NCBI GenBank assembly: GCA_965240325.2
Contig: OZ251238.1
Span: forward strand, 124,001 to 188,000
Direction: 5' to 3'
DNA length: 64,000 bases
Origin: Rebecca billardiae RCC1528
Taxonomy: Eukaryota; Protista; Haptophyta
Shown: positions 1 through 54,600 of the stretch, piece by piece
Numbering within the stretch: position 1 is the first letter of the stretch
Layout: every line of letters starts with the position of its first letter
Program-made: the position numbers and the translations under genes
The notes under the pieces: generated by a model
Told to the model about the DNA's origin: nothing
The model's input: the letters and a program-made list of their open reading frames with translations, nothing else
The model's database searches: none

Positions 1-521
1 CGCGCCCGCCGCCGCCGCCGCCGCGCGCGCGCCGCCGCCGCCGGTTCGGCCGTCGAGCGCGCGGCGCGTGCCGCCGAGTGCGCGCAGCGCGGCCGCGCGC
101 GCCGCGAGCGCGGCATCGGCCGCCGCGTCGTCCGCGCCCGCCGCCTCGGCGTGGGCGAGGGCGGCGGCGGCGGCGGCGGCGGCGGGCGGCGCGCGCCACA
201 GCGGCGCGCGCGCCGCCGCCCACGCCGCCGCCGCGCCCTCCGCGCGCCGCACCGCCGCGTCGGCCGCGCCGAGCGCCGCGGCGAGCGCGCCCGCCGCGTC
301 CGCGCACGCGGCCGCGAGCGCGCCGCCGTGCTCGGCGGCGGCGCCGCGCGCGCCGAGCGCGGCGGCGGCGGCGCGCGGGCCGCGGAGCACCCACCAGTGC
401 CGCGCCGGCCGCGCGCCGCCGTCCGCGCGCTCGCACTCGCACGCCGCCGCGCACGCCGCGCGCACCGCCGCCCAGAGCTGCGCGCGCACACACGGCGCGC
501 TCGGCCACAGCGCCGCGCACA

Positions 522-555
<34 letters not shown>

Positions 556-1807
556 CTCGGAGACGCGGAGGCGGACGCGCGCGCGCGGCGCGGCGTGGGC
601 CTGCGGCGGCAGCGCGGCCGGGCTGCCCCGCCCGCTCCCGCCGCCGCCGGCAGCAGCGCCGCCACCACCGCCGCCGCCCGGCGCCGCCGCCCACGCGCGC
701 AGCGCGCGCGCCGCGCGCCTCGCGAGCGCCGCGGCTAAGCGCGCGTCCGCAGCCGCGGCGTAGGCGGCGGCGCCCGCCACGTTGGCGGCGGCGACGCGCT
801 CGACGGCGGCGCGCGCGGCGGCGGCGGCGGCGCGCGCGGTGGCGGCGGCGCACGCCCCGCCCCGCCCCTCGCCGCCCTCCTCCTCCGCCGCCGCCGCCGC
901 CTCCTCCTCCCCGCCGCCGCCGCCGCCGCCCTCCGCGTCCGCGCGCGCGTCCGCTCCGTCGATGGCCGCCAGCGCGCGCGCCAGCGCCGCCTCTGCGCCG
1001 AGCAGCTCGCGAGAGGCGGCGGCGTACGCGACGAGCGCGCGGCGGAGGCGCGCGGCGCACGCGCGCAGCGCCGCCGCGTCCGTCGGGCCCGCGCCCGCCG
1101 CCGCGCGCACCGCCGCGTGCGCCGCCGCCGCGTGCGGGCGCAGGTGGCGGCGCAGCGGCGGCGGCACGCGCGCGACGGCGGCCGCGCGCGCGTCGAGCGC
1201 GCCGCCGAGCTCGGCGGCGGCGGCGGCGAGCGGCGCCCACTCGGCGGCGGCGGCGGCGAGGGCGCGCGGCACGCCGCCCTCCGGCGCGCCCGCCCCCGCC
1301 GGCGCGTACCCCAGCCGCCCCAGCGCCTCCGCCTCGGCGGGCAGCGCCAGCAGCAGCGGCGGCAGCGCGGGGCACAGCCGCAGCCGCGCGCGGCCGCCGC
1401 CGCCGCGCGCGCGCGCCGCCGAGCCGCCACCGCCACCGTCCGCGCGCGCCCCCGCCGCCGCCTCGGCGGCGGCGCCGTCGGCAGTGCCGCCGGCCGCCGC
1501 GCCGGCGCTGCGCGCCGGCGGCGCGAGCTCGAGCACGGCGAGCGCCCGGCCGCGCGGCGGCGCCGCCAGCTCGCGCGCGGCCGCGGCCGCCCACGCGCCC
1601 ACGAGCGCCGCCGCGCGCGCGGCCGCGGCGGCGCGCAGCGCGGCCGCGTCGGCGAGCACGGCGCGCGCGGCGGCGTGCGCGCCGCACGACTCGCCGAGCG
1701 CGGCGCGCACGAGGCGCGCGCCCAGCTCGCCGCGCGCGCCGAGCGCGCGCGCGCGGCACACCGCCGCCGCCACCGGCGGCCAGCCGCGCGCGCCGCCCAC
1801 CGCGGCC

Positions 1808-1845
<38 letters not shown>

Positions 1846-3895
1846 CTCGGCGGCGGCGCCGCGGCCGAGCGCGGCGCGCGCGCGCCCGACCTCGGCGGCG
1901 GCGGCGCGGAGGAGCGCGCCCTCCGCGTCGGGCAGCGCGGCGCGCACGGCCGGGCGGCCGAGCGCGCCCGCCGCGCGCGCCAGCGCGCGCGCGCGCGCGC
2001 CGTCCGAGCCGCAGCGGCCGAGCGCGGCCGCGAGCGCCGCGGCGAGCGCGCCGTCGGCGCGCGCGCACGCGGCCGCGTGCGCGCGCGCCGCCGCCGCCCA
2101 GCGGCCGCCGTCGTCGGCGCCGAGCGGCGCGGCGGCGGCGGCGGCGAGCGCGGCCCACGCGCGGCCGAGCTCGGCGCCCACCGCGCCCGCGCCCTCGGCG
2201 CCCAGCGCGCCGCCGCGCGCCGCCGCCGCCACCGCCGCGTGCGCCGCCGCCGCCGCGCGCAGCTCGGCGGCGCGCCGCCCGAGCGGCCGCAGCGCGCGCG
2301 CGCCCGCCGCGCCCGCGGCCGGCGCGGGCTCGCGGCGCGCGCGCGCGGCGTCGGCGGCGGCGGCCTCGACGGCGGCGGCGGCGGCGGCCCACGCCGCCTC
2401 CACCCGCGCCGCCGCCGCGCACGCCGCGCCCAGCCCCGCGCCGGGCGCGCCGCCCTCTTCGAGCGCGGCGCGCAGCCGTGCGTGGCAGCGGCCGAGCAGC
2501 GCGCGCCCGAGCGCGGCCACGAGGGCGCACGCGCGCGCGGGCGGGTAGGAGGAGGCGCGGAGGCGCAGGCCGCCGAGCGCGCGCGCGACGGCGCACGCCG
2601 CCTCGCCGTCCGCCTCGAGCCCCGCCGCCGCGCCCTCGCCGCCCTCCACCGCGCCGCCGCCGCCGCCCTCGCCGCCCCCCGCCGCCCACGGCGGCGCGGG
2701 CGGCAGCGCGCTCAGCAGCGCCACGTGCGCGCCCGCCGCGCGCTGCGCACGGCGCGCGCCCTCCGTCGCCTCGGCGAGCGCGGCGAGCACCGTGTGCCGC
2801 CGCGCGCGCTGCAGCACCTCGCGCGCCGCGAGCACGCCTGCGCGCGCGGCGCCGTGGGCGCGCGCGTGAGCGCGGCGGCGCGGCGCGGCGCGGCGCGGCG
2901 CGGCGCGGCGCGGCGCGGCGCGCGGCGGCGGCGCGCGGCGGCGACGCGCGGCGGCGCGCGCGCGGCGCACCGTCGGAGGCGAGAAAGTCGCAGTGCGCGC
3001 CCAGCGCGTCCTCGGCGGCGCGCCAGAAGGGCAGCTCGTCCGCCACGCCGCAGCCCGCCAGCTCCGCCTCGCCGCCCTCGCCGCCCTCGCCGAGCGCGGC
3101 GAGCGCGCGCGCCCCCTCCGCCCAGCCCTCCGCCGCCGCGGCCGCGCTGTCCGCGAGGCGCTCGAGGCCGCCGCTGCCGGGCTGCGCGAGCGCGGCGTCG
3201 GCGAGCTCGGAGGAGCGGCGCGGGCGCGGCGGCGCGCCACCGCCCGCCTCGGCGCGCAGCGCCGCGAGCAGCGCGGGCGGCAGCTCGGCGCTCGGCGCGC
3301 GCACGGCCGCGCCGCCGCGCGCCGCGCTCGCCGCCGCGCCCAGCTCGGACAGCGCCGCGCGCACGGCCGCGCCGGGCGCGCGCGCGCGGCCGGCGGTCGG
3401 GCTGTGGTGCGCCGGGTGCTCCGCGTCGAGCAGCGCGCGCAGCGCCTCCTCCGCGTACGCGCGCACCGTCTCGAGCGCGCCGCCATCGTGCGCGCAGCTC
3501 AGCAGCCGCAGCTGGGGACCGAGCGGCGCCGCGCACTCGAGCGGCGCAGAGCCCGCGCGCCGGACGAGCGCGAGCGCGGCGCGCACGCCGGGCGGGGGCG
3601 GGCCGGCGGGGAGGAGCTCGAGCGTCCCCTCCGGCGGCGCGCCGGGCGCGCCGCCGCCCTCGGCGCCGCGCGTGCCCAGCACGAGCGCGCGCGCGCCGCC
3701 GCGCGCGCGCGCAAACGCGCACAGCTGCTCGCGCGCGGCCGCGGGCTCGAGCGCCGCGCGGACGGCGGCGGGCGCGGCGCCGAGGAGCGGGGGCGCGGCG
3801 GCGCAGAGGAAGTCGGCGAGCGCCTCGGCGGCCTCGCCGTCCGGCCCGTCCGCGCCGTCGTCCGCCGTGGCGGGTTGCGGCTCCGCGGCCATCAT
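1..3895 (-). CDS. DYNC1H1: Cytoplasmic dynein-1 heavy chain, N-terminal tail (DHC_N1 region), highly divergent; runs off the left edge of the window
   Basis: Not in the ORF track as such. Minus-strand frame from ATG 3895/3892 with intron 2838-2970 (GT..CAG). Colinear matches to DHC1 as I recall it: ADELPFWRAAEDAL~LQEISFWLNLERAL; GVLAAREVLQRARRH~EVLLTLDILKHGKRF; LRASSYPPARVRALVAALGRAL~[30 protein letters not shown]~RPHIRGAI; PPVAAAV..LVRAALGE~PPVSGSI..RVEDVLGK. Confidence 0.8.
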
Positions 3896-4243
3896 CAGGC
3901 CGACCGCGCGGCAAGCCTGCTTGCCACTGGCCTTTTGGGCGGCCGCGCGGCGCCGACTCATCGTCATCAAGCGGGAGCACCGGTCATTCCGGAGCCATTT
4001 GCTGGAGTTTTGTTATTCATTCCACCGCCACGCGAATTGGGCTCATTAGATAGGCCAGTAATTACCCGCGTACTAAAGTAGCTCCGGCACGCGGAATGAG
4101 CCCACCGACAATTCGATCATAGTCATTTCATGGATAGTGCCTGGCGACCATGTGCACAGCTTACCCGGCTGGCGACGAGCGCAGTGCTCGCGGCGCGGAG
4201 CGCAGAAGCGCCACACACCGCGCGCGCGCGCGGCCGCGCGCGC

Positions 4244-12368: not shown

Positions 12369-14291
12369 TCAGCCGCGCGCGCGCCGCCGCCGCCGGCCGG
12401 GCGCGCACGCGCTGTTCGCCGCCCAGCCCTCATCCGCTCCGCCCGTGTGCCGCACGCGCAGCGAGGGCACGCACGCGCCGCGCGCGCGCTCGGTTGCGGC
12501 CGCGCACGCGCTCTTCCCCTTGAGCCGGCGGCCGGCCGAGGCGTTGGGCCGCGGCGGCGCGTGCGCGCCGAGCGGCACGTAGCAGCAGGCGCACGTGCGC
12601 ACGAGCGCGGCCGCCGGCCGCGCCGCCGCGCCGCCGCCGTGCGGCGCGGGCAGCTCGCGCGAGGGGCCGGCGGCTTGGCGCAGCGCGTGGGCGAGGGTGC
12701 ACTCGTCACGCCGCGGCGCGCAGCCTGCGCCGCCGCCCTCGCGCGCCGCCTGCGCGCCCGCCGCGAGCAGCGCGCGCACGCGCTGCGGCATGCGGCCGAC
12801 GGCGGCGCTGAGCGCGCGCCGCGCGACGCCGTGCAGCGCGCGGTCGGCGGCGGTGGCGCCGAGCGCGGCGCGCACGAGCGCGGGGGTCCACTCGAGCCGG
12901 CCAGTGGCGTGCTGCTGGGCGCGCGTGTTCACGTGCGCGCGCGGCGTGCGCAGCGGGCACTGCGCCATCCCCGCCGCCACGCACACCGCCGCAAGCGTGG
13001 CGGGCAGCGCCTCGGTCAGCCCGAGCACGTCGTAGGGCGCCAGCAGCGCGAGCTGCGCCGCGCTCGCGGGCGGCGGCGGCGGCAGGTGCGGCGCGAGGCT
13101 GTGCGCGCTCAGCAGGCCGAGCCGCTCGAGCAGGTCACCGCCGTCAGCGCCGTCAGCGCCGTCAGCGCCGTCGGGCGCGCGCGGCGGCGCGCCGCCGGCC
13201 AGGCGCACCGCCGCCGGCGACGCCTCCGCCGGCCCTTGCGCCGCGCGGCCGCACGCCTGATCGACCCAGCTGGGCGGCCAGCGCGCCGCCTGCGCGCGCA
13301 GCCGCGCGCGCTCGGTGCCGTTGAAGCCGCCGGCGCCGCCCAGCTGGCGCTGCTGCGGGGGCGGCAGCGGCATGTGCAGGCCGAGGGCGCGGAGGGCGGC
13401 GCCCGCGCCGAAGAGCGCCGACCACTCGGCCGCCGCGTCCTCCGCGCGCGGCCACCCCTCCAGCCCGCGCGCCGCCGCCGCGCGCTGCGCCGGCGCGTAG
13501 CCGCTGTCGGCCGCGAGCGCGTCGCACTGCCGGTTGGGGCTGAGCGCAAAGAAGCGGCCGATGGCGGCGTGCAGCGCGGAGGTGTTGGCGGTGAGCGCCT
13601 CCCACCCGCCGGGCGCGAGCTTCCCGCTCGGCAGCGCGTACGCCGCGCCCTCCGCGCCGAACGCCTGCAGCTGCTGCCGCTGCGCCAGCCCCTCCGGCAG
13701 CTGCCACTGCGAGGCCAGCAGCGACAACGGCGCGCGCAGAGCAACCACCAGCACCGCGCGCGGCGCGCACGGGGCGCGCGCGCCGGGGCGGGCGAGCGCG
13801 CGCGCGAGGGCGCGCGCGCGCGAGGCGTGCCCGATGAAGAGCCGCGAGCCGTCCTGCGGCACGTGGTACTCGATCGACGCGCCGGCGAACGGGAGGCGGC
13901 CGGCCAAAGGAGGGCCGCGCCCGTCGGCGGCGGCGGCCGCGGCGGCGGCGGAGGCGTTGGCCCAGAGCGCGAGCACCTTGGGCCGGTAGTAGGGGTGCAT
14001 GTGGCACCGCGACGGCGTGAGCGTGAGCCGGTCCCGCCGCGACACGTGCAGCCAGCGGCCCGCCGTGTGCAGCGAGAGCCGCTCGAACGCCACGCGCACG
14101 CTCGTGCCGCCCGCGCGCACGAGGTGGCGCCAGAGCACGAGCGGCGCGCACGGCGCGGCGGAGGGCAGCTCGAGCGGCACGATCTCGCTGCACGCGGGCG
14201 CGCGCGGCGGCGCCGCCGGCGCGACCGCGCACGCCGCGCACGCGACGACGAGCGCGGCCGTCGTCGACAGCGCGCAGGCGCGGATGCGCAT
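12369..14291 (-). CDS. Signal-anchored sulfotransferase-like protein
   Basis: N-terminal hydrophobic segment; WRHLVRAGGTSVR resembles the PAPS-binding HIPKTGGTS motif; VVALRAPLS and DVLGLTE resemble Sulfotransfer_2/Gal-3-O-ST motifs. Confidence 0.55.
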   Translation of the reverse strand: MRIRACALSTTAALVVACAACAVAPAAPPRAPACSEIVPLELPSAAPCAPLVLWRHLVRAGGTSVRVAFERLSLHTAGRWLHVSRRDRLTLTPSRCHMHPYYRPKVLALWANASAAAAAAAADGRGPPLAGRLPFAGASIEYHVPQDGSRLFIGHASRARALARALARPGARAPCAPRAVLVVALRAPLSLLASQWQLPEGLAQRQQLQAFGAEGAAYALPSGKLAPGGWEALTANTSALHAAIGRFFALSPNRQCDALAADSGYAPAQRAAAARGLEGWPRAEDAAAEWSALFGAGAALRALGLHMPLPPPQQRQLGGAGGFNGTERARLRAQAARWPPSWVDQACGRAAQGPAEASPAAVRLAGGAPPRAPDGADGADGADGGDLLERLGLLSAHSLAPHLPPPPPASAAQLALLAPYDVLGLTEALPATLAAVCVAAGMAQCPLRTPRAHVNTRAQQHATGRLEWTPALVRAALGATAADRALHGVARRALSAAVGRMPQRVRALLAAGAQAAREGGGAGCAPRRDECTLAHALRQAAGPSRELPAPHGGGAAARPAAALVRTCACCYVPLGAHAPPRPNASAGRRLKGKSACAAATERARGACVPSLRVRHTGGADEGWAANSACAPGRRRRRARG

Positions 14292-14420
14292 GGGCCCGCG
14301 CCGCGCCCGGGCGCAGCGACAAGCGCTATCGCTGGGCACCGGATTCTGCGGCTGGGTTTGCACTTGTTGCACAGCGCTGTTGCGTCTCCAGTTTGGATAC
14401 TAGTACCAAGGGCGGTACTA

Positions 14421-15202
14421 CAGGGTCTCCAACATTAAACTGGACACTTTGGGCAGCAGCTCAGCGTACGGCCTGTGGCTGCCTCGCGCGGGGTCAGGAG
14501 CGGCCAGCTCGGCTCGTGTGCACCCCACTAGGTCTGTCTGCGACCGCGCATAGCCGGGCAGCCCGCGTGGAGCACCCCTCTGGGTCATGCGGACAGTCGG
14601 CACAAGGCTGGTCGTGAGGGCCGTGAAGCAGCCGTGTGGCTTCTGCGCATGTCTGTAGCCAGCAAGCCCGCTCAAGGCCGCGCAGATATTATTACGTGGC
14701 ATGGTCGATGACTATGCGGCATGCGCTCGACAGCCCTGGGCAAGCCCGGACGTAGCGCTACACCAGGAGTATATACGGCTCGATCGGACCAGCCTACCAG
14801 TTGCGCACCTCGCTTGCACAGCTGCTGCACAGCCCATCGATCGGCTCTGGCCGTGCAGGCAAGGGCTACAGTCGGCGCCACTACCCGCAGCGAACGCTGG
14901 AGACCCACCAGTGCGCGCACCAACCCGCCCGCCGCCAAATGCAACCGTGCGCCAGATACGAATTTTAGCAGGCATGCCACCCGCGGGGGCTCCGTGGACC
15001 TGTTCAGAGCCAACCGCTAGTCGGTTGAGCTGTACATCCAAGCCAGCCCTGGCCACACGCTGAGCGCGCCGCTCGCTGCACCCACACCCTGTCGTCATCC
15101 GAGGAGTAAGGTCCATGGCGCTCATGCGAGCCTCTGGCCCATCTCATCGTTAGCAGCCGTAGTCAGCAAAAATCAGTGTCCGAACAATTGTTGGGGACCC
15201 TG
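14421..15202. mobile_element. Tc1/mariner-type non-autonomous element E, copy 1 (782 bp)
   Basis: Imperfect 28-bp TIRs CAGGGTCTCCAACATTAAACTGGACACT / AGTGTCCGAACAATTGTTGGGGACCCTG. Confidence 0.85.
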
Positions 15203-17637
15203 TGTGCACACTCGCCTGCCGCATGTTGAGTGCCTGTCAGCCAGGGAGCTGAAGACGACGGCTTCTCAGAGGCCGCGCGAGCTCGACGGCGGCGCGCGCG
15301 GGCACGGTGGGCTGGCGCGGCCCCGGCGCGCGCCCATCCGGCCGCACGCCGCCGCGCCAGCCGCTCCTGCACGCGGGCTGACCGAGGCGCCAGCCTCACC
15401 CAACCGCCGCTGCTTGCCGTGGAGCTGGTCGGGAGATGATGGGGTGGGTCGGCTGCTCCCAGAAGCTCTCCACGCGCGCCGCGCGCGCTGCATACGGGTG
15501 CGGCGGGTCGGCGCGGCCCCGCCGCGCGCCCATCCGGCCGCGCGCCGCCGCGCCAGCCGCTCCTGCACGCGGGCTGACTCAGGCGTCAGCCTCACCCAAC
15601 CGTGAGCCGCCAGCTGCTTGCCGTGGAGCTGGTCGGGAGAGGATGGGGTGGGTCGGCTGCTCCCAGAAGCTCCCCACGCGCGCCGCGCGCGCTGCATGCG
15701 GGTGCGGCGGGTCGGCGCGGCCCCGCCGCGCGCTCATCCGGCCGCGCGCCGCCGCGCCAGCCGCTCCTGCACGCGGGCTGACTCAGGCGTCAGCCTCACC
15801 CAACCGTGAGCCGCCAGCTGCTTGCCGTGGAGCTGGTCGGGAGATGATGGGGTGGGTCGGCTGCTCCCAGAAGCTCTCCACGCGCGCCGCGCGCGCTGCA
15901 TACGGGTGCGGCGGGTCGGCGCGGCCCCGCCGCGCGCCCATCCGGCCGCGCGCCGCCGCGCCAGCCGCTCCTGCACGCGGGCATGGCTGCCGAAGATCCG
16001 CACGGAATCGGCCGGGCATCAGACAGCAGTACCCGAATAACGGTTCGAATCGCTCAGTAACGTCGAAAGCAATGCCTGCCGGCCGCGGCGCGCCGGCGCG
16101 CAGGTCAGCACGGCGGGCATGCGCTGGTACGGACCACTGTGGTGCTCCTGCGAGCAGCTGCTGACGCGTTGGCGCGATGAGACCAGCGTCCTCGCAAACA
16201 CGTGACCAGGTGGCCCAGTGCCACTGCCCTGCCTCCACACGCTAGTCGAGGGAGTGACGCGTGCCGAATGTGTCTCGCCGGATGACCACCAAGGCTGCTG
16301 TCAATAAATATGAGGTGGGTCTCGTCGACAACCCGAACTGCTGGGTGTCTATTTGAAATATACTCCGCAGATTCTGCCAGTGGCAGCTACGGAGCTACGC
16401 TCGTCGCCGAGATACCTTCAGTGTGCACACTCGCCTGCCGCATGTTGAGTGCCTGTCAGCCAGGGAGCTGAAGACGACGGCTTCTCAGAGGCCGCGCGAG
16501 CTCGACGGCGGCGCGCGCGGGCACGGTGGGCTGGCGCGGCCCCGGCGCGCGCCCATCCGGCCGCACGCCGCCGCGCCAGCCGCTCCTGCACGCGGGCTGA
16601 CCGAGGCGCCAGCCTCACCCAACCGCCGCTGCTTGCCGTGGAGCTGGTCGGGAGATGATGGGGTGGGTCGGCTGCTCCCAGAAGCTCTCCACGCGCGCCG
16701 CGCGCGCTGCATACGGGTGCGGCGGGTCGGCGCGGCCCCGCCGCGCGCCCATCCGGCCGCGCGCCGCCGCGCCAGCCGCTCCTGCACGCGGGCTGACTCA
16801 GGCGTCAGCCTCACCCAACCGTGAGCCGCCAGCTGCTTGCCGTGGAGCTGGTCGGGAGAGGATGGGGTGGGTCGGCTGCTCCCAGAAGCTCCCCACGCGC
16901 GCCGCGCGCGCTGCATGCGGGTGCGGCGGGTCGGCGCGGCCCCGCCGCGCGCCCATCCGGCCGCGCGCCGCCGCGCCAGCCGCTCCTGCACGCGGGCTGA
17001 CTCAGGCGTCAGCCTCACCCAACCGTGAGCCGCCAGCTGCTTGCCGTGGAGCTGGTCGGGAGAGGATGGGGTGGGTCGGCTGCTCCCAGAAGCTCTCCAC
17101 GCGCGCCGCGCGCGCTGCATACGGGTGCGGCGGGTCGGCGCGGCCCCGCCGCGCGCCCATCCGGCCGCGCGCCGCCGCGCCAGCCGCTCCTGCACGCGGG
17201 CATGGCTGCCGAAGATCCGCACGGAATCGGCCGGGCATCAGACAGCAGTACCCGAATAACGGTTCGAATCGCTCAGTAACGTCGAAAGCAATGCCTGCCG
17301 GCCGCGGCGCGCCGGCGCGCAGGTCAGCACGGCGGGCATGCGCTGGTACGGACCACTGTGGTGCTCCTGCGAGCAGCTGCTGACGCGTTGGCGCGATGAG
17401 ACCAGCGTCCTCGCAAACACGTGACCAGGTGGCCCAGTGCCACTGCCCTGCCTCCACACGCTAGTCGAGGGAGTGACGCGTGCCGAATGTGTCTCGCCGG
17501 ATGACCACCAAGGCTGCTGTCAATAAATATGAGGTGGGTCTCGTCGACAACCCGAACTGCTGGGTGTCTATTTGAAATATACTCCGCAGATTCTGCCAGT
17601 GGCAGCTACGGAGCTACGCTCGTCGCCGAGATACCTT
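15203..17637. repeat. Tandem duplication of 1216-bp unit U (15203-16418, 16422-17637) joined by CAG; each unit has about 3.3 copies of a 204-bp subrepeat
   Basis: ORFs repeat at offset 1219; tgcttgccgtggagc recurs at 15411, 15615, 15819. Confidence 0.92.
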
Positions 17638-18419
17638 CAGGGTCTCCAACATTAAACTGGACACTTTGGGCAGCAGCTCAGCGTACGGCCTGTGGCTGCC
17701 TCGCGCGGGGTCAGGAGCGGCCAGCTCGGCTCGTGTGCACCCCACTAGGTCTGTCTGCGACCGCGCATAGCCGGGCAGCCCGCGTGGAGCACCCCTCTGG
17801 GTCATGCGGACAGTCGGCACAAGGCTGGTCGTGAGGGCCGTGAAGCAGCCGTGTGGCTTCTGCGCATGTCTGTAGCCAGCAAGCCCGCTCAAGGCCGCGC
17901 AGATATTATTACGTGGCATGGTCGATGACTATGCGGCATGCGCTCGACAGCCCTGGGCAAGCCCGGACGTAGCGCTACACCAGGAGTATATACGGCTCGA
18001 TCGGACCAGCCTACCAGTTGCGCACCTCGCTTGCACAGCTGCTGCACAGCCCATCGATCGGCTCTGGCCGTGCAGGCAAGGGCTACAGTCGGCGCCACTA
18101 CCCGCAGCGAACGCTGGAGACCCACCAGTGCGCGCACCAACCCGCCCGCCGCCAAATGCAACCGTGCGCCAGATACGAATTTTAGCAGGCATGCCACCCG
18201 CGGGGGCTCCGTGGACCTGTTCAGAGCCAACCGCTAGTCGGTTGAGCTGTACATCCAAGCCAGCCCTGGCCACACGCTGAGCGCGCCGCTCGCTGCACCC
18301 ACACCCTGTCGTCATCCGAGGAGTAAGGTCCATGGCGCTCATGCGAGCCTCTGGCCCATCTCATCGTTAGCAGCCGTAGTCAGCAAAAATCAGTGTCCGA
18401 ACAATTGTTGGGGACCCTG
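17638..18419. mobile_element. Element E, copy 2 (782 bp), same orientation
   Basis: Appears identical to 14421-15202; same ORF translations offset by 3217. Confidence 0.85.
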
Positions 18420-18500
18420 TAGTACATTGCAGACCCCTTGCATGAGCTGCGCTGATCGGGCAGCGCCCGGGCGGGCAGGCCGGCAGGGCCGCGGCCGCCG

Positions 18501-20780
18501 CTACGAGTCCGCGCGGCCCTGCGCGAGCTCGACTGTCGTGTTGAGCGGCAGGCTGTCGAACGTCTCGCACGGCGGCGGCGCGCCCGCGCCCCGCCCGCCG
18601 CTCGGCCAGCACACCGTGACGCTCGCGGCGCCGCCGGGCGGCTGCGGCCCCAGGCCCGCGCACGTGCGGCGCGTGTCGTGCTGGCTGGCGTCGGCGGGGC
18701 CGGACACGTCGCGCCGCACGGTGCGGCCGCCCGCGCTCAGGAGGAGGAGCGCGCCGAGCGCGTCGCGGTTGGCGTGCGCGCCGCGCAGCCGCACGCACAG
18801 CCACGCGCCGCGCTGCCGCGCCTCGTTCCGCCAGAGGAACGTGCTGTTGCGGTCGCTGAGCAGCACGTCCACGCGCCCGTCGCCGTCGTAGTCCGCGAGC
18901 GCCGCGGACACGTGCGGGAAGGCGCGCGCGCTCGAGCGGTAGTCGCCGACGTACGCGCGGCCGAAGCGCGCGGGGAAGGCGCGGCTGAAGCGCAGCGTGC
19001 CGCGCGCGTTCCCCAGCACGACCAGCGCGTGCGGCGCGCCCCGCGCCTCGCCGCCGTCCGCCGCCGCTGCCCTGGCCGCGCGTTGGCTCGCGCACACGCA
19101 CACGCCGAGTGCGTCCATCTGGCCGTCGTTGTCGAGGTCGGCGGCGGCGAGCGGCTCGGCGCGGACGCAGGGCGAGCGCTTGGGGCCCGCCACGTCGACG
19201 GTGCCCATCGGCGTGTCGGCGAGCAGCTCGGCCGGCCCCGCGTACAGCGCGAGCGAGGCGGACGGGCCCTCGGCCGCGCACGTGAGCAGCTCGAGCGTCG
19301 AGGGCTCGCCATCAAAGTCGGCCGCCACGATCGCGCACGGCCGGCGCCGGCTGCGGCGCGGCCGCGCGCCCAGCTGCGAGAAGCTGCCGTCGTACCGCAG
19401 CGCGTCGACGAGCAGCCGCGCGCGCGTCTGCGTGAGCACGTGCGTCACGCCGCCGCGCCGCGCGTGCGTGTTCAGCGCGCGCACGGAGTACAAGATGCCC
19501 GCGCGGCCCTCCTCCCACGCGCTCGTGTTGAGGCCAAGCGGGGGCGAGAGCGGCGGAGAGAGCGGGGGCGGCTCCAAGCCTGCGACGACGCCCGCCTCCG
19601 CGCCTGCGACGCCCGCCCCTGCGCGCGCGACGCCCGCCGTCGGCACGTGCGGCGAGGCGAAGGCGAAGCGCTCGCCCGCGCGCGGGCGCCTGCCGAGGTG
19701 CAGCGAGGACGGCCGCGCGTGGCCCGTCTTGCGCGGCCAGTTCACCGCGAGCACGTCCAGCCAGCCGTCCGCGTTGAAGTCGGCCGCGCAGAAGCCGTGC
19801 GTGCGCTCCAGCGCGCACGCCAGCCCGGCGGCGGCCGCCGCGTGCCGGCCGCCCACGAGGTTGCCCGAGCCGTCGGCTGCGTACAGCGCGTTCCAAGTGT
19901 CGGCCACGCCCCTCGCGCCGGCGCCGAAGCACTCGTCCGCGCCCTGCCCGCACGCGCTCACGTTCGCCTGCCCCTGCGCCGCGCCGATCGACTGGAGCAG
20001 CTCCGGAGAGCCATCGCCGTCGAGGTCGGCCCACAGCGCGCCGTGCGCGTCAAAGTACGGGCTGACGCAGCGCTGCCCGCCGAGCGGCGTGCCGGGCGGG
20101 CCGGAGGCGACGGTGGGCCAGACGAAGTCGCGCGACACGTTGCGTCCGTCGGTCGGCGCGTACCGCGCGTCGGTCGTGCGCAGCGCGGAGCGCGCCCACA
20201 CGCGCGGGTGCAGCGAGCACGCGCCCGTGCAGCGCGCCGTGAACGTGCCGTCGCACCGGCTCTCGAAGAGCAGCCTCGACTGGCCGTGCAGCGTGAGGTA
20301 GATGTCCACGCAGCCGTCGCCGTTGAAGTCCACCCACGACACGCCCCACAGCTCGTGCGACGAGCACGCCGACGCGTCCTCTGCGGCCGCGACGGCGGCG
20401 GGTGGCTCGTCCGCGCGGCCGCGAGCAAACGCGGACGCGGCCGCCTCGTCCTCGGGCGCTGGGGCGGCACTGGCGGCGAGCGCGGCGAAGGCGCACTCGC
20501 TGAGCGGGCGGGCGTGCCACGCCACGCCCGCCAGCCCGGTCACCTCGCGCAGCTGGTAGCGGTGGCCGCGCAGGGCCGCGTCGCGCGGCTCCGCCCAGCT
20601 GCGCGGATCGGCTGCCTCGCCCGGCGGCCGCGCGGCCCGAGAGTGGCGGCCCGCAGCGATGCGCTGGAGAAGCCCCTTTGTAGGCTGCCACCACCGCAGC
20701 TTGGCGCGCTCGTCACCACCGCGCACCACGACGAGCGCGGCGAGGACGACGGGCCACAGGGCGGGGGCCGCCTGTCGCAT
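18501..20780 (-). CDS. Secreted FG-GAP/VCBS repeat protein with C-terminal ASPIC/UnbV domain (CRTAC1-like)
   Basis: Signal peptide; repeats DFNGDGCVDIY, DLDGDGSPELL, DFNADGWLDVL, DLDNDGQMDAL, DYDGDGRVDVL; C-terminal NRDALGA...SQH...GLG...VTVCWPSG. Confidence 0.88.
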   Translation of the reverse strand: MRQAAPALWPVVLAALVVVRGGDERAKLRWWQPTKGLLQRIAAGRHSRAARPPGEAADPRSWAEPRDAALRGHRYQLREVTGLAGVAWHARPLSECAFAALAASAAPAPEDEAAASAFARGRADEPPAAVAAAEDASACSSHELWGVSWVDFNGDGCVDIYLTLHGQSRLLFESRCDGTFTARCTGACSLHPRVWARSALRTTDARYAPTDGRNVSRDFVWPTVASGPPGTPLGGQRCVSPYFDAHGALWADLDGDGSPELLQSIGAAQGQANVSACGQGADECFGAGARGVADTWNALYAADGSGNLVGGRHAAAAAGLACALERTHGFCAADFNADGWLDVLAVNWPRKTGHARPSSLHLGRRPRAGERFAFASPHVPTAGVARAGAGVAGAEAGVVAGLEPPPLSPPLSPPLGLNTSAWEEGRAGILYSVRALNTHARRGGVTHVLTQTRARLLVDALRYDGSFSQLGARPRRSRRRPCAIVAADFDGEPSTLELLTCAAEGPSASLALYAGPAELLADTPMGTVDVAGPKRSPCVRAEPLAAADLDNDGQMDALGVCVCASQRAARAAAADGGEARGAPHALVVLGNARGTLRFSRAFPARFGRAYVGDYRSSARAFPHVSAALADYDGDGRVDVLLSDRNSTFLWRNEARQRGAWLCVRLRGAHANRDALGALLLLSAGGRTVRRDVSGPADASQHDTRRTCAGLGPQPPGGAASVTVCWPSGGRGAGAPPPCETFDSLPLNTTVELAQGRADS

Positions 20781-49097: not shown

Positions 49098-51578
49098 CTA
49101 GAACGGGGTGAAGAGCCGCCCCGTGCCCAGCGGCGAGTAGGGGTTCACCTTGGCCCTGCGCAGCGGCGCGCGCGCGCCACACGCCGCGCGTGCGCGCGCG
49201 TGAGCGCAGCGCGCGCCGCGCGGCGTGCCGCGTGCCGCGGCGCTGCGCGGCGCTGCGCAGTGCTGCGTGTGGGCAGTGCGCGCACCACATCACGGCGTCG
49301 GAGAGGCCGAGCGCGCTCTCGCCGTCGTCGAGCACCACCACCGGGCCCTGCGCACGCCGCGCGCCGCACGCACGGCGCACGGGGCGACGCGCTTCAGCGA
49401 GCGTCGAGCGCGTTGCTGCCAGCCGCGCGCGCGCGCCGCGCGCGGGCAGCCGCGCGCGGCGCGGCGCGCGCGGCGCGGCGCGGCCGTGGCGCGCGCACCC
49501 GCACGCGCCGCCCGTTGAGCAGCGAGGTGCGCCGGTTGCTCACGTGGCCCGAGGCGGGGAGCGTCGCGCCGAGCACGCGCACCACGCTGTCCGCGCTCAC
49601 GGAGAGCGGGTCGCCCGGCAGCCCGGGCGGCGGCGCGGCCGGCAGCTGCTCCGCGCCGCCGCCCGCCGCCGCGCCGCCCGCGCCGAGCGGCGGCAGCGGC
49701 GACTCTCGGCCGGAGCCGCCGCCGCCGCCGGCGCCGGCGGCGAGGGCGGGCGTGTGGTGCGCGGGCGGGTGCGCGGGCGCGGCGCGCGCGCTGGCGAGCG
49801 CGCCGAGCTCGTCCGCCACGCTCCTGATCCGCGCCGCCGCGCCGTCCGCGTCGCCGCCGGCGGGGTGTGGCGGCAGCAGCGCGGCCAGTGCGCGCGCCTC
49901 CGCCTCCGCGCGCGCGGGGTGGGCGAACGCCTGGCAGCCGTCTCGCACGCCCAGCGCGCACTCGACGGCGAGCGCGCGGAGCTTGGGCGCGTCGAGCTCG
50001 GGCGGGCCGGCGTCGAAGCGCGGCTGCGCGCCCGGCGACGACGGCGGCACGCCCGACCCCGCCGGCCGCCCCAGCGCCGCGGCGAGCAGCGGGCGCAGCA
50101 CGGGCGCGAAGCCGCGCGCGCACGCGTCCGCGCAGCCGCCGTAAGCGCACAGGCAGAGAATGGCGGCGCGCGTGGGCACGTCGACGGCGGCGGCGGTGGT
50201 CGGGTCGAGCGGCAGCGCGCGGCACGCGTCGATCGCGGCGCAGAGCGGGCCGCCCAGCCCCGCCGCCGCGCGCACCGCCGAGCCGCCCGCCGCCGCCGCG
50301 GGCGCCGGGCGGCGCACCTCGGTCGACGCGGCGGCGGCGCGGAGCGCGCCGAGGGCGGCGGCGGCGGCGGCGCCGAGCTGCGCCGGCCCGCACAGGGCGA
50401 GGTGCACGATGGCGGCGGGCGCGTCGGCGCGCGCGGCGGCGGCCTCGGCGAGCGCGGGCTGCTCCGCCGCGCCCGCCACGCCCGCCGCCTCGCGCACGCG
50501 CGCCACCACCTCCGCGCCCGCGCCGCCGAGCGCGGCGCGCGCGCACAGCGCGCCCAGCCGCGTCGCGCGGCGCGGCGCGTCCGCCGCCGGCTCGTCGGCC
50601 TTGAGCGCGGCCGCGGCCAGCTCCCACGCGCCGTGGCGCTCGAGGCGGCAGGCGAGGAGCCACGCCGCGTGCGCCTGCGCGCGGGGCGGCGCGGGGCCGG
50701 GGCGGCGCGCTGAGCGGGGGGCGGCGGCGCGCGAGGGCGCGGGCGGCGCGCGAGGCCCCGCGCGCGCCTTGCGCGCGCCGCGCCGCGCGCCGCCCCGGGC
50801 GCCGCCGCCGCCGGGCGGCGCGGGCGCGCGCGCGCGCACCTTGAGCTCGCGGTGCGCGGGCAGCTGCAGGCAGAGCGCGAGCGCGAGCTCGGGCATGTGC
50901 CCGCTCAGCAGCGCGCCCACCGCCGCGTCCACGCCGTGCGCGCCCAGCGGCAGCGTGAGGTACGCGCACGCCGCGCCCACCGCCTCCCCGTGCGCGTAGT
51001 GGTGCGCAGCGGCCGCGCGCACGACACGCAGCTCGGACGCGGAGACGGCGGCGACGCCGTCGCCGAGGGCGTCGGGGGGCGAGGGCGGGCCCGCGCCGAG
51101 CGCGGCGCCGAGCGCGTCGGCGCCGCCGTCCGCGCCGCCGCCGCCACCCCCGCCGCCGCCCCCGCCGCCCCCGCCCCCACCGCCGCCGCCCGCCGCGCCC
51201 GCCGCGGCCGCGCTCGCGTCCGCACTCGGGTAGACTCCCGCAGCGACGCCCGCGGCGATCACGGCGGCGTCGTGATGCTGCTGGCGCGCGAGCAGCTCGT
51301 CGATGAGCTGCGAGGCGTGGCCGCCGGCGAGGAAGAGCGGCGCCGCCACCTCCACCGCCTCGCCCTGCTGCAGCGACGCGTGCGCGTACCTGCGCATCAG
51401 CTCGGCCCAGTAGGCCGGCCCGACGGCGGGCGCGACCGCGAGCGCGGCCGCCCAGTTGTTGTCGCCCAGCTGGCACTCGCACCACTCGCGGAAGTGGCCT
51501 GCGCGCGGGGGCGGCGGAGGGGGCGGGGGCGCGCGCGCGCGCTCAGCTCGGACGCGGGCGCACGCGCGGCGCGCGGCA

Positions 51579-51612
<34 letters not shown>

Positions 51613-54600
51613 GCGTGCGCGTGGTGCGTGCGCGCGGCGCGCCGTGCGCAGGTGCCGCGCGCGCGCACCCAGCCTCAGGTGGTGGGACGCGAGCAGCGCC
51701 GCGCGCTCCTCCTTGCGCAGCCGCTTGGTGGAGGAGGCGGCGGTGCCCATCGACGTGGACAGCGCCAGCCGGCCCGTGTTGCCGCGCGAGAGGCGGGTCT
51801 CGCGCCGCGTCGAGTGGTTGAGGGTGAGCCCTGCGCGTGTGTGCGTGTGCGTGTGTGTGCGTGCGTGTGCGCGTGTGTGCGTGTGTGCGTGCGTGCGTGC
51901 GCGCGTGTGCGCGCGTGTGTGGCGGCAGCGGGGGCAGGGGCAGGGGCAGCCGTCAGCGTGGCTCGCCCCGCCCGGCGCACGCCCTGCCCGCGCGCAGCGC
52001 CGCCCGCGCGCCCGCTCGCGCGCGCGCACCCTGCAGCGACGCGTGCACGTGGTGCAGCTGCCGCCCCAGCGGTTGGAAGGCAGCGTCAGGCGGCACCTCC
52101 GCGCCCGTGCGCAGCGCCTCCGCGAGCTGCCACACGTTCGCCACGCCCGTGGGCGCGTGCACGAAGGCGGAGAGCTCGCGGAGCAGCGCGAACCAGCCGA
52201 CGCCGCCCGCCTTCGCCGCGCCCTCCAGCTCGCCGATCCGGGCGCGCACCGCCGCGGACGCGGCGCCGGCGAGCGCCGACGAGCCGCCGCCGCCGCCCGG
52301 CGCGCCGCCCGGCGCGCCGCCCGGCGCGCGCTCGTGGTGGGGCGAAGGCGGCAGCGTGACCGGCAGCTCGCGCGTGGAGGAGTCGAGCACCGACCAGCCG
52401 GACGCCGAGGCCTCCGCCGCGGCGCGCGGCTCGAGCACGAACGGCGCGAGCAGCGGCGTGAGCGCCCCCTCCAGCGACCACATGCGCAGCTGCGCGCGAC
52501 AACACGGCGCGCGCGGGCGGCGCGCGGGCGGCGCGCGCGTGAGCGGCGCGCGTGAGCGCGCGGCGCGGCGCGAGCGCGCGCGCGCGCGCGCGCGGGGCCG
52601 CGCGCGCGCGCGCATGCGCGCGCGCCGTGTTGTCGCGCGAGGCGGTGAGCACGAAGAAGGGCCTGTCCGGGTGCGCGGCGATCGCGTAGATGTCGACGGC
52701 GTGCTCCGCGATCGCGTACAGCAGCCGGCCGCCCGCGCGCACGTCCCACGCGCAGAGCTGCCCGTCCCAGCCGCCGCTGAAGAGCAGCCATGGCAGCTCC
52801 GGGCAGAAGCAGAGGGCGCGCGCCTTGGAGGTGTGCCCGCGCAGCTCGACCGAGCCGCCCGCGCCGCCGCCCGTCGGCCCGCCCGGCGCCAGCCTCCACA
52901 CGCGCACCGTGGTGTCGTCCGAGCTCGAGGCGAGCGTGTGCGGCTGCGCGGGGCACCACGCCACGTTGAACGCGCGCGCCGAGTGGCCCTTCAGCGCGTG
53001 CAGCGGCGGCTCGGCGACCTTGAAGCCGCCGGCGACGAGGCGGAGCACGGCGTGCACGCGCACCACGCCGTCGTGGCACGCGCTCGCGAACGTCGCCACC
53101 GCGTTCTGCGCCGCGCCGCCCTCCGCGCCCTCGGGCGCCGCAGGGCACCACGCCAGGCCGTACACGGCTGCGGGCAGAAACGCCTCGCACCAGCGCCGCC
53201 CGTCGGGCGCGTGCAGGTACACGCGCGCGTCGGCGCAGCCCATGCCGATGAGCTGCGGCTCGAGCGCGCACCAGTCCACGCTGAACAGCGCCTTCTCCGT
53301 CGCGGACACCTGCGCGCCGACGAAGCGCGCGGGCGCGCGGCGCGCGGCGGCGCGGCGCGTGGGCGGCCGCGCGCTCGTGCGCGCGCGGCGCGCGCGCGCG
53401 GCGGCGAGCAGGGCGGGCCCCGCCGCGCGGCGCGGCGCGCGCACCTGCACCGCCGCGCCCGCCTGCCCCGTGTGCACGTCCCACACGATCAGCGAGCCCA
53501 CGCCCGAGACGCACGCCAGCCGCTCCCCGCGCGACGGCTCCCACGCGCACGCGTACAGCGCGCCGCGCGGCTTGGACGCGACGCCAGGCGGCGTGGCCTT
53601 GGGGTGGGGCGTGCTGCGCCAGTCGCCGAACTTGTCGGCGCCGCCCGCGGCGGCACCGCCGCCGCCGCCCGCCCGCCCGCCCGCCACCGCCACGCTGTCC
53701 GCGAAGAAGGTCGCGATGCACGCCGCGTCGGCGGCGCCGCCTCCGCCCGCGCACACCTCCCACAGCCGCGCCGAGCCGTCAAACGCGGCCGACGCGACGC
53801 GGTTGGGGTCGGTCGGGTGGAAGCGCGCGCCGAAGACGGTGTCGGTGTGCCCCGTCGTCGCGACGAACGGCCAGTACCGCCGCTCCAGGTCGTACACGCC
53901 CACCGCGCCCGAGCGGAACGTGACGACCGCGCGGCGCGAGCCGTCGGCCACAAACGCGAGCGCGTGGCAGCCGTTCTCGGCCGAGCGGTCGAGGCGCAGC
54001 GTGGAGGTGGGCGCCTTGTGCGAGACGTTCCACAGGCGGACGGTGGAGGAGGTGGAGGCGATCGAGACGAACGAGCCCGGCGCGCCCGGCATCCACGCGA
54101 GCGCGTGGTGCGCGCGCGGCAGCTCCGCCTCGAAGCTCTGCACGGGCACGCGCGCCTCCACGTCCACGAGGCTCAGCTCTCCGTCCAGCGACGCCACCAG
54201 CATGTAGTGCTCGGAGCAGGGGTCCCACGCCACGTCGGTGACGGGCGCCTTGTCCTTGGTGTGGTACTGCCACCGCACACTCGTCCCCTTCTGGTCCGCG
54301 CTCCCCGTCTGCGCCAGCACCGCGACGCAGCCGCCGATCGTGCCGACGCCGAGCCGCGACGTGCGCCCAGACCAGCGCAGCACGGTGGGCGTGTGCGTGA
54401 AGGTGGTGATCAGGCTGGTCGTGCCCGCGGTGAGGTCGTGGAGCTGGAGGCGCCCGTCCCGCGCGCCCGACGCCACCAGCGCGCGGTTGTGCTGCGCCCA
54501 CGCCACCGAGTACACGCCGTCGACGCGCACGCGGCCCGCCTCCGCCTCCGCGTCCACGTCCCACGTCACGATGTGGTCGGTGACGGTGACGGCGAACTCG

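Follow-up and report, generated by a model that had tools for sequence, protein, structure and literature searches.

The window analysed here, 64,000 nucleotides from Rebecca billardiae RCC1528 (contig C21:124001-188000; positions below count from its first base), contains a 4-kb block that proves to be a genuine DNA transposon of the Tc1/mariner type, mobile in the recent past. Two identical 782-bp modules, E1 and E2, lie in direct orientation around two copies of a 1216-bp internal region (INT), and the whole is, with high probability, a non-autonomous element of the form LTDR-(INT)2-LTDR (LTDR, long terminal direct repeat) belonging to a young family of the Tc1/mariner superfamily, as judged from sequence comparison within the assembly (72 Mb in 41 contigs, ~72% G+C). 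The family is very young: the E copies are 99-100% identical to one another and both copies of its putative transposase gene are intact.

Architecture of the window element

E1 (14421-15202) and E2 (17638-18419) are 100% identical over 782 bp, and each is bounded by imperfect 28-bp terminal inverted repeats (TIRs), with 21 of 28 positions matching. Four occurrences of the 14-nt outer TIR word were counted in the window, where 0.03 are expected. A TA is found at the outer ends only, and without the 4-kb block the flanks would join into a 10-bp palindrome with one TA at its centre; the inner ends of the modules adjoin TG and TT, which may favour use of the outer ends. As a short, non-coding, TIR-bounded sequence with a TA duplication and many near-identical copies, the E module corresponds to a miniature inverted-repeat transposable element (MITE). 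The two INT units differ from each other at two positions (99.84% identity) and are separated by CAG; viewed with BLAST, the pair has a 1219-bp period, with the last CAG overlapping the first CAG of E2. Within each INT, a 96-bp head is followed by 3.35 units of a 204-bp satellite and then by the 436-bp tail. Neither E nor INT of the window matched anything in Pfam or Rfam, and a search inside INT for TIR words resembling transposase-binding sites turned up only chance 8-9-mers. The features of the element are:

14419-14420, no strand: left TA target-site duplication; all 18 insertions that were checked have TA at each outer end
14421-15202, plus strand: E1, a 782-bp LTDR and non-coding MITE-like module, with TIRs at 14421-14448 and 15175-15202
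15203-16418, plus strand: INT1, 1216-bp internal region, derived by deletion from the interior of the autonomous element and made up of head, satellite, and tail
15299-15982, plus strand: 204-bp satellite in INT1, 3.35 units; the shared deletion junction at which the transposase gene was removed is 15982/15983
15983-16418, minus strand: INT1 tail, located in autonomous copies directly upstream of the minus-strand transposase ATG; probable promoter/5' leader
16419-16421, no strand: CAG at the INT-INT joint, putative 3-nt footprint left when a middle E was excised
16422-17637, plus strand: INT2, second 1216-bp internal region, with satellite at 16518-17201, deletion junction at 17201/17202, and tail at 17202-17637
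17638-18419, plus strand: E2, second 782-bp LTDR, identical to E1, with TIRs at 17638-17665 and 18392-18419
18420-18421, no strand: right TA target-site duplication, part of the outer TA pair

Genome-wide census of the family

Searching the whole assembly identified 17 copies of INT at 12 loci, each copy lying between E modules or adjoining another INT, in the following arrangements:

E-INT-E monomer: C39, C12 (two loci), C13, C3, and C14
E-INT-E monomer with the left E interrupted: C29:1194627
(E-INT)2-E: C33
E-(INT)3-E-INT-E: C19
E-(INT)2-E: the window (C21)
4.4-kb copy with a transposase gene: C29:736988-741368 and C20:1681588-1685960

The inner junctions are identical at all 12 array loci, and at 11 of these the outer ends are intact, with TA at each end and unrelated flanking DNA. 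Approximately 16 solo copies of E are also present in the genome, and the seven that were checked are bordered by TA at either end and lie in unrelated DNA. The common inner junctions at 12 loci, the TA pair at the 11 intact ones, and the solo copies together indicate that the family moves as a unit. TIR pattern scans of the genome returned 44 left ends and 51 right ends. The lengths of INT step by 204 bp (808, 1011, 1216, 1420, and 1624 bp), and no copy of INT was found outside the E arrays in the 72 Mb, where the only matches were GC-rich stretches of 80-100 bp at 73-79% identity. Across 18 insertion sites, the family displays a strong palindromic target preference, W-A-S-TA-S-T-W, with no G or C at -3 and +3 in a genome of such high G+C content; this preference accounts for most of the palindrome at the window site. 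The E modules fall into an autonomous haplotype, distinguished by six diagnostic sites, and a haplotype common to all deletion derivatives, with the solo copies occurring in both of these and in intermediate haplotypes.

An earlier sequence-only reading of the window had described the two identical TIR elements around 2 x 1216 bp, the TA at the outer ends only, the TG and TT at the inner ends, and the palindrome restored by removal, and had assigned the modules to the Tc1/mariner type from their TA duplication and CAG-initiated TIRs; the sequence bears out all of these at the coordinates listed above. The same reading had proposed looking for E-INT(n)-E units at other loci with different flanks and identical inner junctions, for solo E copies, and for an autonomous partner sharing the TIRs, and each was found, the last as the 4.4-kb copies on C29 and C20. 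Its proposal that the unit moves in one piece by its outermost TIRs holds for the E-INT(n)-E units of the family; the doubled form in the window may have moved in one piece or doubled after landing.

Several E copies have been interrupted by other sequences. At C29:1191608-1194979, the left E of the E-INT-E unit is split near E position 432 by an insertion of ~2.6 kb. The E at C13:727569-729699 (L061) contains a nested 1339-bp TIR element (L061:632-1970) whose TIRs are ~21 bp long and whose 6-bp duplication corresponds to E positions 522-527, and the E at C3:3949533-3952097 (L062) contains a nested element of ~1.7 kb (L062:~239-1957), for which the TIR is G-rich and 13 bp long and the duplication measures 5-6 bp. 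The last two loci had been retrieved by a TIR-pair search as candidates for the autonomous partner and were rejected as E copies holding unrelated nested TIR elements.

Autonomous copies and their predicted transposase

The 4.4-kb copies on C29 and C20 are 99.68% identical over 4385 bp, and their homology ends exactly at TA+E and E+TA, demonstrating that they moved as whole units. Both carry an extra 1.42 kb inside INT, which encodes an intact open reading frame (ORF) of 417 amino acids on the minus strand (L050:250-1503). From its sequence, this ORF is predicted to be the Tc1-like DDE transposase of the family. It matches the Pfam family DDE_3 (E 3.5e-6, 27.4 bits) and, weakly, HTH_23; it also matches the catalytic domain of Sleeping Beauty (5cr4, E 1.2e-5), where the motifs of the second D and of the E fall into alignment, and the ESM Atlas assigns it to Tc1-like clusters (0.96). 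The predicted catalytic triad is D192/D309/E352, with the spacing D-116-D-42-E. The ORF is present in two genomic copies only, both intact, and its next relatives in the genome are 30-34% identical. It is the only credible ORF in INT of the autonomous copies, which contains nothing resembling a reverse transcriptase, and an exact-sequence look-up in a public protein collection gave no match. The putative transposase was located by reading the 1.4-kb insert of the C29 and C20 arrays; genome scans with Pfam DDE_3, DDE_1, and Transposase_1 missed it and returned either nothing or unrelated genes on C31 and C26.

The C31 gene is a 460-amino-acid DDE_3/HTH_32 ORF (L063:1409-2791, minus strand), and the C26 match is to DDE_1 (pogo-like; G000:C26:648473-648823) within a 783-amino-acid open frame. 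A related Tc1-like family (456-457 amino acids, 34% identical) is found in exact tandem arrays beside a 417-bp satellite at C7:2676300-2680500 (L064; period 3999 bp), C30:256640-267068 (4832 bp), and C1:2.33-2.39 Mb. One 3999-bp period of the C7 array was searched for a TA-flanked TIR module, and none was found.

Origin of the internal region

In the autonomous copies, the putative transposase gene is flanked by sequences to which the head and tail of the window INT show ~98% identity. A single deletion junction is common to all non-autonomous INT copies (15982/15983 in the window), and it links position 72 of a satellite unit to the base preceding the transposase ATG. The INT of the window is thus the family's own autonomous interior without its transposase gene and not captured foreign cargo. 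One deletion, extending from within the 204-bp satellite up to the transposase ATG, removed the gene and produced the 1216-bp INT. The occurrence of one junction in every non-autonomous INT indicates that the non-autonomous lineage was founded by a single deletion, before its spread to 10 or more loci. The INT tail, read on the minus strand, probably corresponds to the promoter and 5' leader of the transposase gene.

The INT-INT joint and a proposed life cycle

All three INT-INT junctions in the genome, one in the window and two on C19, read CCTT+CAG+TGTG. In Tc1/mariner transposition, cleavage of the non-transferred strand falls a few nucleotides within the transposon, and the terminal triplet stays behind after end-joining (PMC6943129). 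The canonical footprint of these elements is accordingly the terminal 3 bp of the transposon, with Sleeping Beauty giving TA-CAG-TA or TA-CTG-TA (PMC6943129). E starts with CAG and ends with CTG, so excision of the middle E from an E-INT-E-INT-E dimer predicts INT-C(A/T)G-INT, as is seen. The CAG joint therefore indicates the excision footprint of a middle E cut from such a dimer.

In the life cycle that we propose, transposase supplied in trans would cut at the outermost TIRs and paste the whole unit into the TA of a W-A-S-TA-S-T-W site; the outcome matching such transposition is present at the 11 loci that retain two intact outer ends. Doubling would begin with an unequal exchange between direct E repeats, giving E-INT-E-INT-E, and multimers of the kind needed are present on C33 and C19. 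The transposase would then excise the middle E, and joining of the 3-nt overhangs would leave CAG between the two INT units. This order of unequal exchange followed by excision is what we infer from the arrays, and a one-step variant is also possible, with cleavage at inner ends on sister chromatids followed by joining of the flanks.

INT1 and INT2 of the window share two substitutions absent from every other INT copy, and the C19 and C33 arrays each have their own private INT variants, indicating that multimerisation and homogenisation were local and recent. Because transposition is cut-and-paste, the 4-kb form may have arisen at the window locus or arrived already doubled. Concerted evolution is also seen among the E modules inside arrays: at C39:114151-116930, a private single-nucleotide polymorphism (SNP) is common to both E modules; at C33:490495-494866, two of three E modules share a 2-bp insertion; and at C12:366905-369686, a private 2-bp insertion is present in one E.

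Alternative explanations

The sequence-only reading had interpreted the block as a composite transposon of the bacterial kind, in which two MITEs inserted independently around unrelated host DNA that is now carried as cargo. Mobility of the whole through outer ends with TA and the existence of solo E copies are both as such a composite would have them. However, the lack of TA at the inner junctions speaks against two independent MITE insertions around host DNA, E encodes nothing, the intervening sequence has no E-free donor copy anywhere in the 72 Mb, and that sequence is ~98% identical to the flanks of the family's putative transposase gene, with one common deletion junction. The composite and its cargo are for these reasons improbable, and the LTDR-type organization is preferred. 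Still less plausible, and in effect excluded, is that E is the long terminal repeat (LTR) of a non-autonomous LTR retrotransposon similar to a terminal-repeat retrotransposon in miniature (TRIM) or large retrotransposon derivative (LARD), with INT as its internal domain. Direct terminal repeats around an internal region, solo repeats, and arrays sharing repeats would all fit that view, but the duplication is invariably a 2-bp TA and not 4-6 bp, E has 28-bp TIRs starting with CAG rather than the TG..CA ends of an LTR, INT begins with TGTG without a tRNA-complementary primer binding site (PBS) and ends without a polypurine tract (PPT), and the autonomous copy encodes a predicted DDE transposase and nothing like a reverse transcriptase. 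Segmental duplication is ruled out because homology ends at TA at every locus.

Within an LTDR-type element, the INT doubling might have arisen without transposase, as a tandem duplication or deletion through replication slippage or microhomology-mediated end-joining. One base of microhomology (G) at both breakpoints would suit this origin, as would the private SNPs common to both INT units, which make the event local and recent. Yet the breakpoints match the E termini plus 3 nt to the base, the 3 nt are the terminal triplet of the transposon as in canonical footprints, and the same joint is found in the C19 array with a different INT subtype of 1224 bp, and we regard a transposase-independent doubling as unlikely. 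A mis-join in the assembly, with the second INT or E representing a collapsed or expanded repeat, is very unlikely. Repeats of 0.8-1.2 kb that are nearly identical pose a difficulty for assembly, but there are only 41 contigs, two sites distinguish INT1 from INT2, the independent C19 array has the same INT-CAG-INT joint, and coherent structures are found at 12 loci.

Some points nevertheless weigh against a non-autonomous LTDR element doubled by excision. The structure at this locus is that given by the assembly, and a search of the assembly with the left flank of the window element returned a self match only and no empty allele, so insertion at this site is deduced from its flanking TA pair and from how the rest of the family behaves. 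The model does not account for the LTDR layout itself, and the inner junctions are TG and TT and not TA. The three CAG joints may trace to only two events, and a 782-bp end-joining deletion with 1-bp microhomology could formally yield the same joint. Finally, the 27.4-bit DDE_3 score of the 417-amino-acid ORF is just below the Pfam cut-off of 28.6, and its transposase activity is predicted only.

Comparison with known systems

Cut-and-paste DNA transposons are defined by inverted ends. The family shares with canonical Tc1/mariner elements (Tc1, Sleeping Beauty, and Stowaway-type MITEs) the TA duplication, TIRs that start with CAG, a DDE transposase with an N-terminal helix-turn-helix (HTH; here a weak match), the generation of non-autonomous copies by internal deletion, and, probably, the 3-nt footprint. 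It belongs to the superfamily by its TA duplications, the imperfect 28-bp TIRs on every E as candidate transposase sites, the predicted DDE and HTH domains in the autonomous copies, and the probable footprint; the transposase ORF is absent from the window copy. Whereas the ends of canonical elements are inverted repeats only, those of the E family are complete 782-bp TIR-bounded modules in direct orientation, and in the predicted transposase 42 residues separate the second D from the E, compared with 34 in Tc1 and Sleeping Beauty.

Like bacterial composite transposons of the Tn5, Tn10, and Tn9 type, the element has two smaller mobile modules around a core, with outer ends that move the whole and modules that are mobile alone. 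Unlike in those composites, the E modules are non-coding, the transposase gene is in the core, the core is not host DNA, and the inner junctions lack a target duplication. In the maize Ac/Ds macrotransposons and the Drosophila FB-flanked 'TE', two nearby DNA-transposon copies mobilise the DNA between them, but these are one-off captures of host DNA and not a propagating family of fixed architecture with an internal transposase.

The closest likeness is to KolobokP elements, which have the structure LTDR-INT-LTDR with each LTDR bearing its own short TIRs (Kojima and Bao 2022, Mob DNA 13:24; PMC9587614). KolobokP also occurs as solo LTDRs with target-site duplications, as (LTDR-INT)n-LTDR and LTDR-(INT)n-LTDR multimers, and as non-autonomous families with internal deletions; its INT-INT joints were explained by the authors through excision of an LTDR, and they stated that the LTDR-INT-LTDR layout is found in no other DNA transposon (PMC9587614). 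The E family has the same set of TIR-bearing LTDRs, solo LTDRs, multimers, INT-INT forms, and internal-deletion derivatives. It differs in having a Tc1-like rather than a Kolobok DDD/E transposase, target-site duplications of TA rather than 3-5 bp, and LTDRs of 782 bp compared with ~450 or 660 bp. At the INT-INT joints, KolobokP has 3-4-bp micro-deletions and the E family a 3-nt addition equal to the E terminus. KolobokP carries an ORF for a His-Me finger nuclease, invoked by its authors for multimerisation, that has no counterpart in the E family, and its hosts are animals, whereas the E family is found in a GC-rich alga-like eukaryote. The E family therefore resembles KolobokP in working and build but is not a member of the KolobokP lineage. 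No Tc1/mariner element bearing long terminal direct repeats came up in full-text literature searches, and an LTDR architecture with solo, multimer, and INT-INT forms has been published only for KolobokP, an unrelated superfamily.

We tentatively suggest that a Tc1/mariner lineage independently evolved paired direct end-modules of the KolobokP type, is still active, and multimerises without a homing-type nuclease. If so, unequal LTDR exchange together with excision of units or single LTDRs would suffice as a route of net copy gain for a cut-and-paste element, and finding long direct end-modules in a second, unrelated superfamily would mean that evolution has arrived at the composite-like layout more than once and that it is not peculiar to KolobokP. 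The absence of the nuclease of the KolobokP model allows the E family to discriminate between models of multimer formation. With the autonomous element, its deletion derivative, solo E copies, multimers, and the INT-INT form all in one genome, the proposed life cycle is directly testable; the window locus contributes the deletion derivative, the putative 3-nt footprint, and the family census. For annotation, such elements are easily mistaken for LTR elements, cargo-bearing composite transposons, or satellites.

Genomic surroundings

Two parts of the window (1-4000 and 50001-52000) have extreme G+C content, reaching 84-90% in 2-kb windows, with six frames open. Since such stretches keep all six frames open, ORF lists for the window are uninformative without a check of composition. 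The element itself carries no gene and sits in a gap of ~210 bp between two minus-strand genes. The left neighbour (12369-14372, minus strand) has its ATG near 14290, ~130 bp from the element, which lies upstream of it; its translation is protein-like but matches no Pfam family at E<=0.001, leaving the earlier label 'sulfotransferase-like' unconfirmed. The right neighbour (18501-20780, minus strand) encodes FG-GAP repeats, and the element lies ~80 bp past its stop codon.

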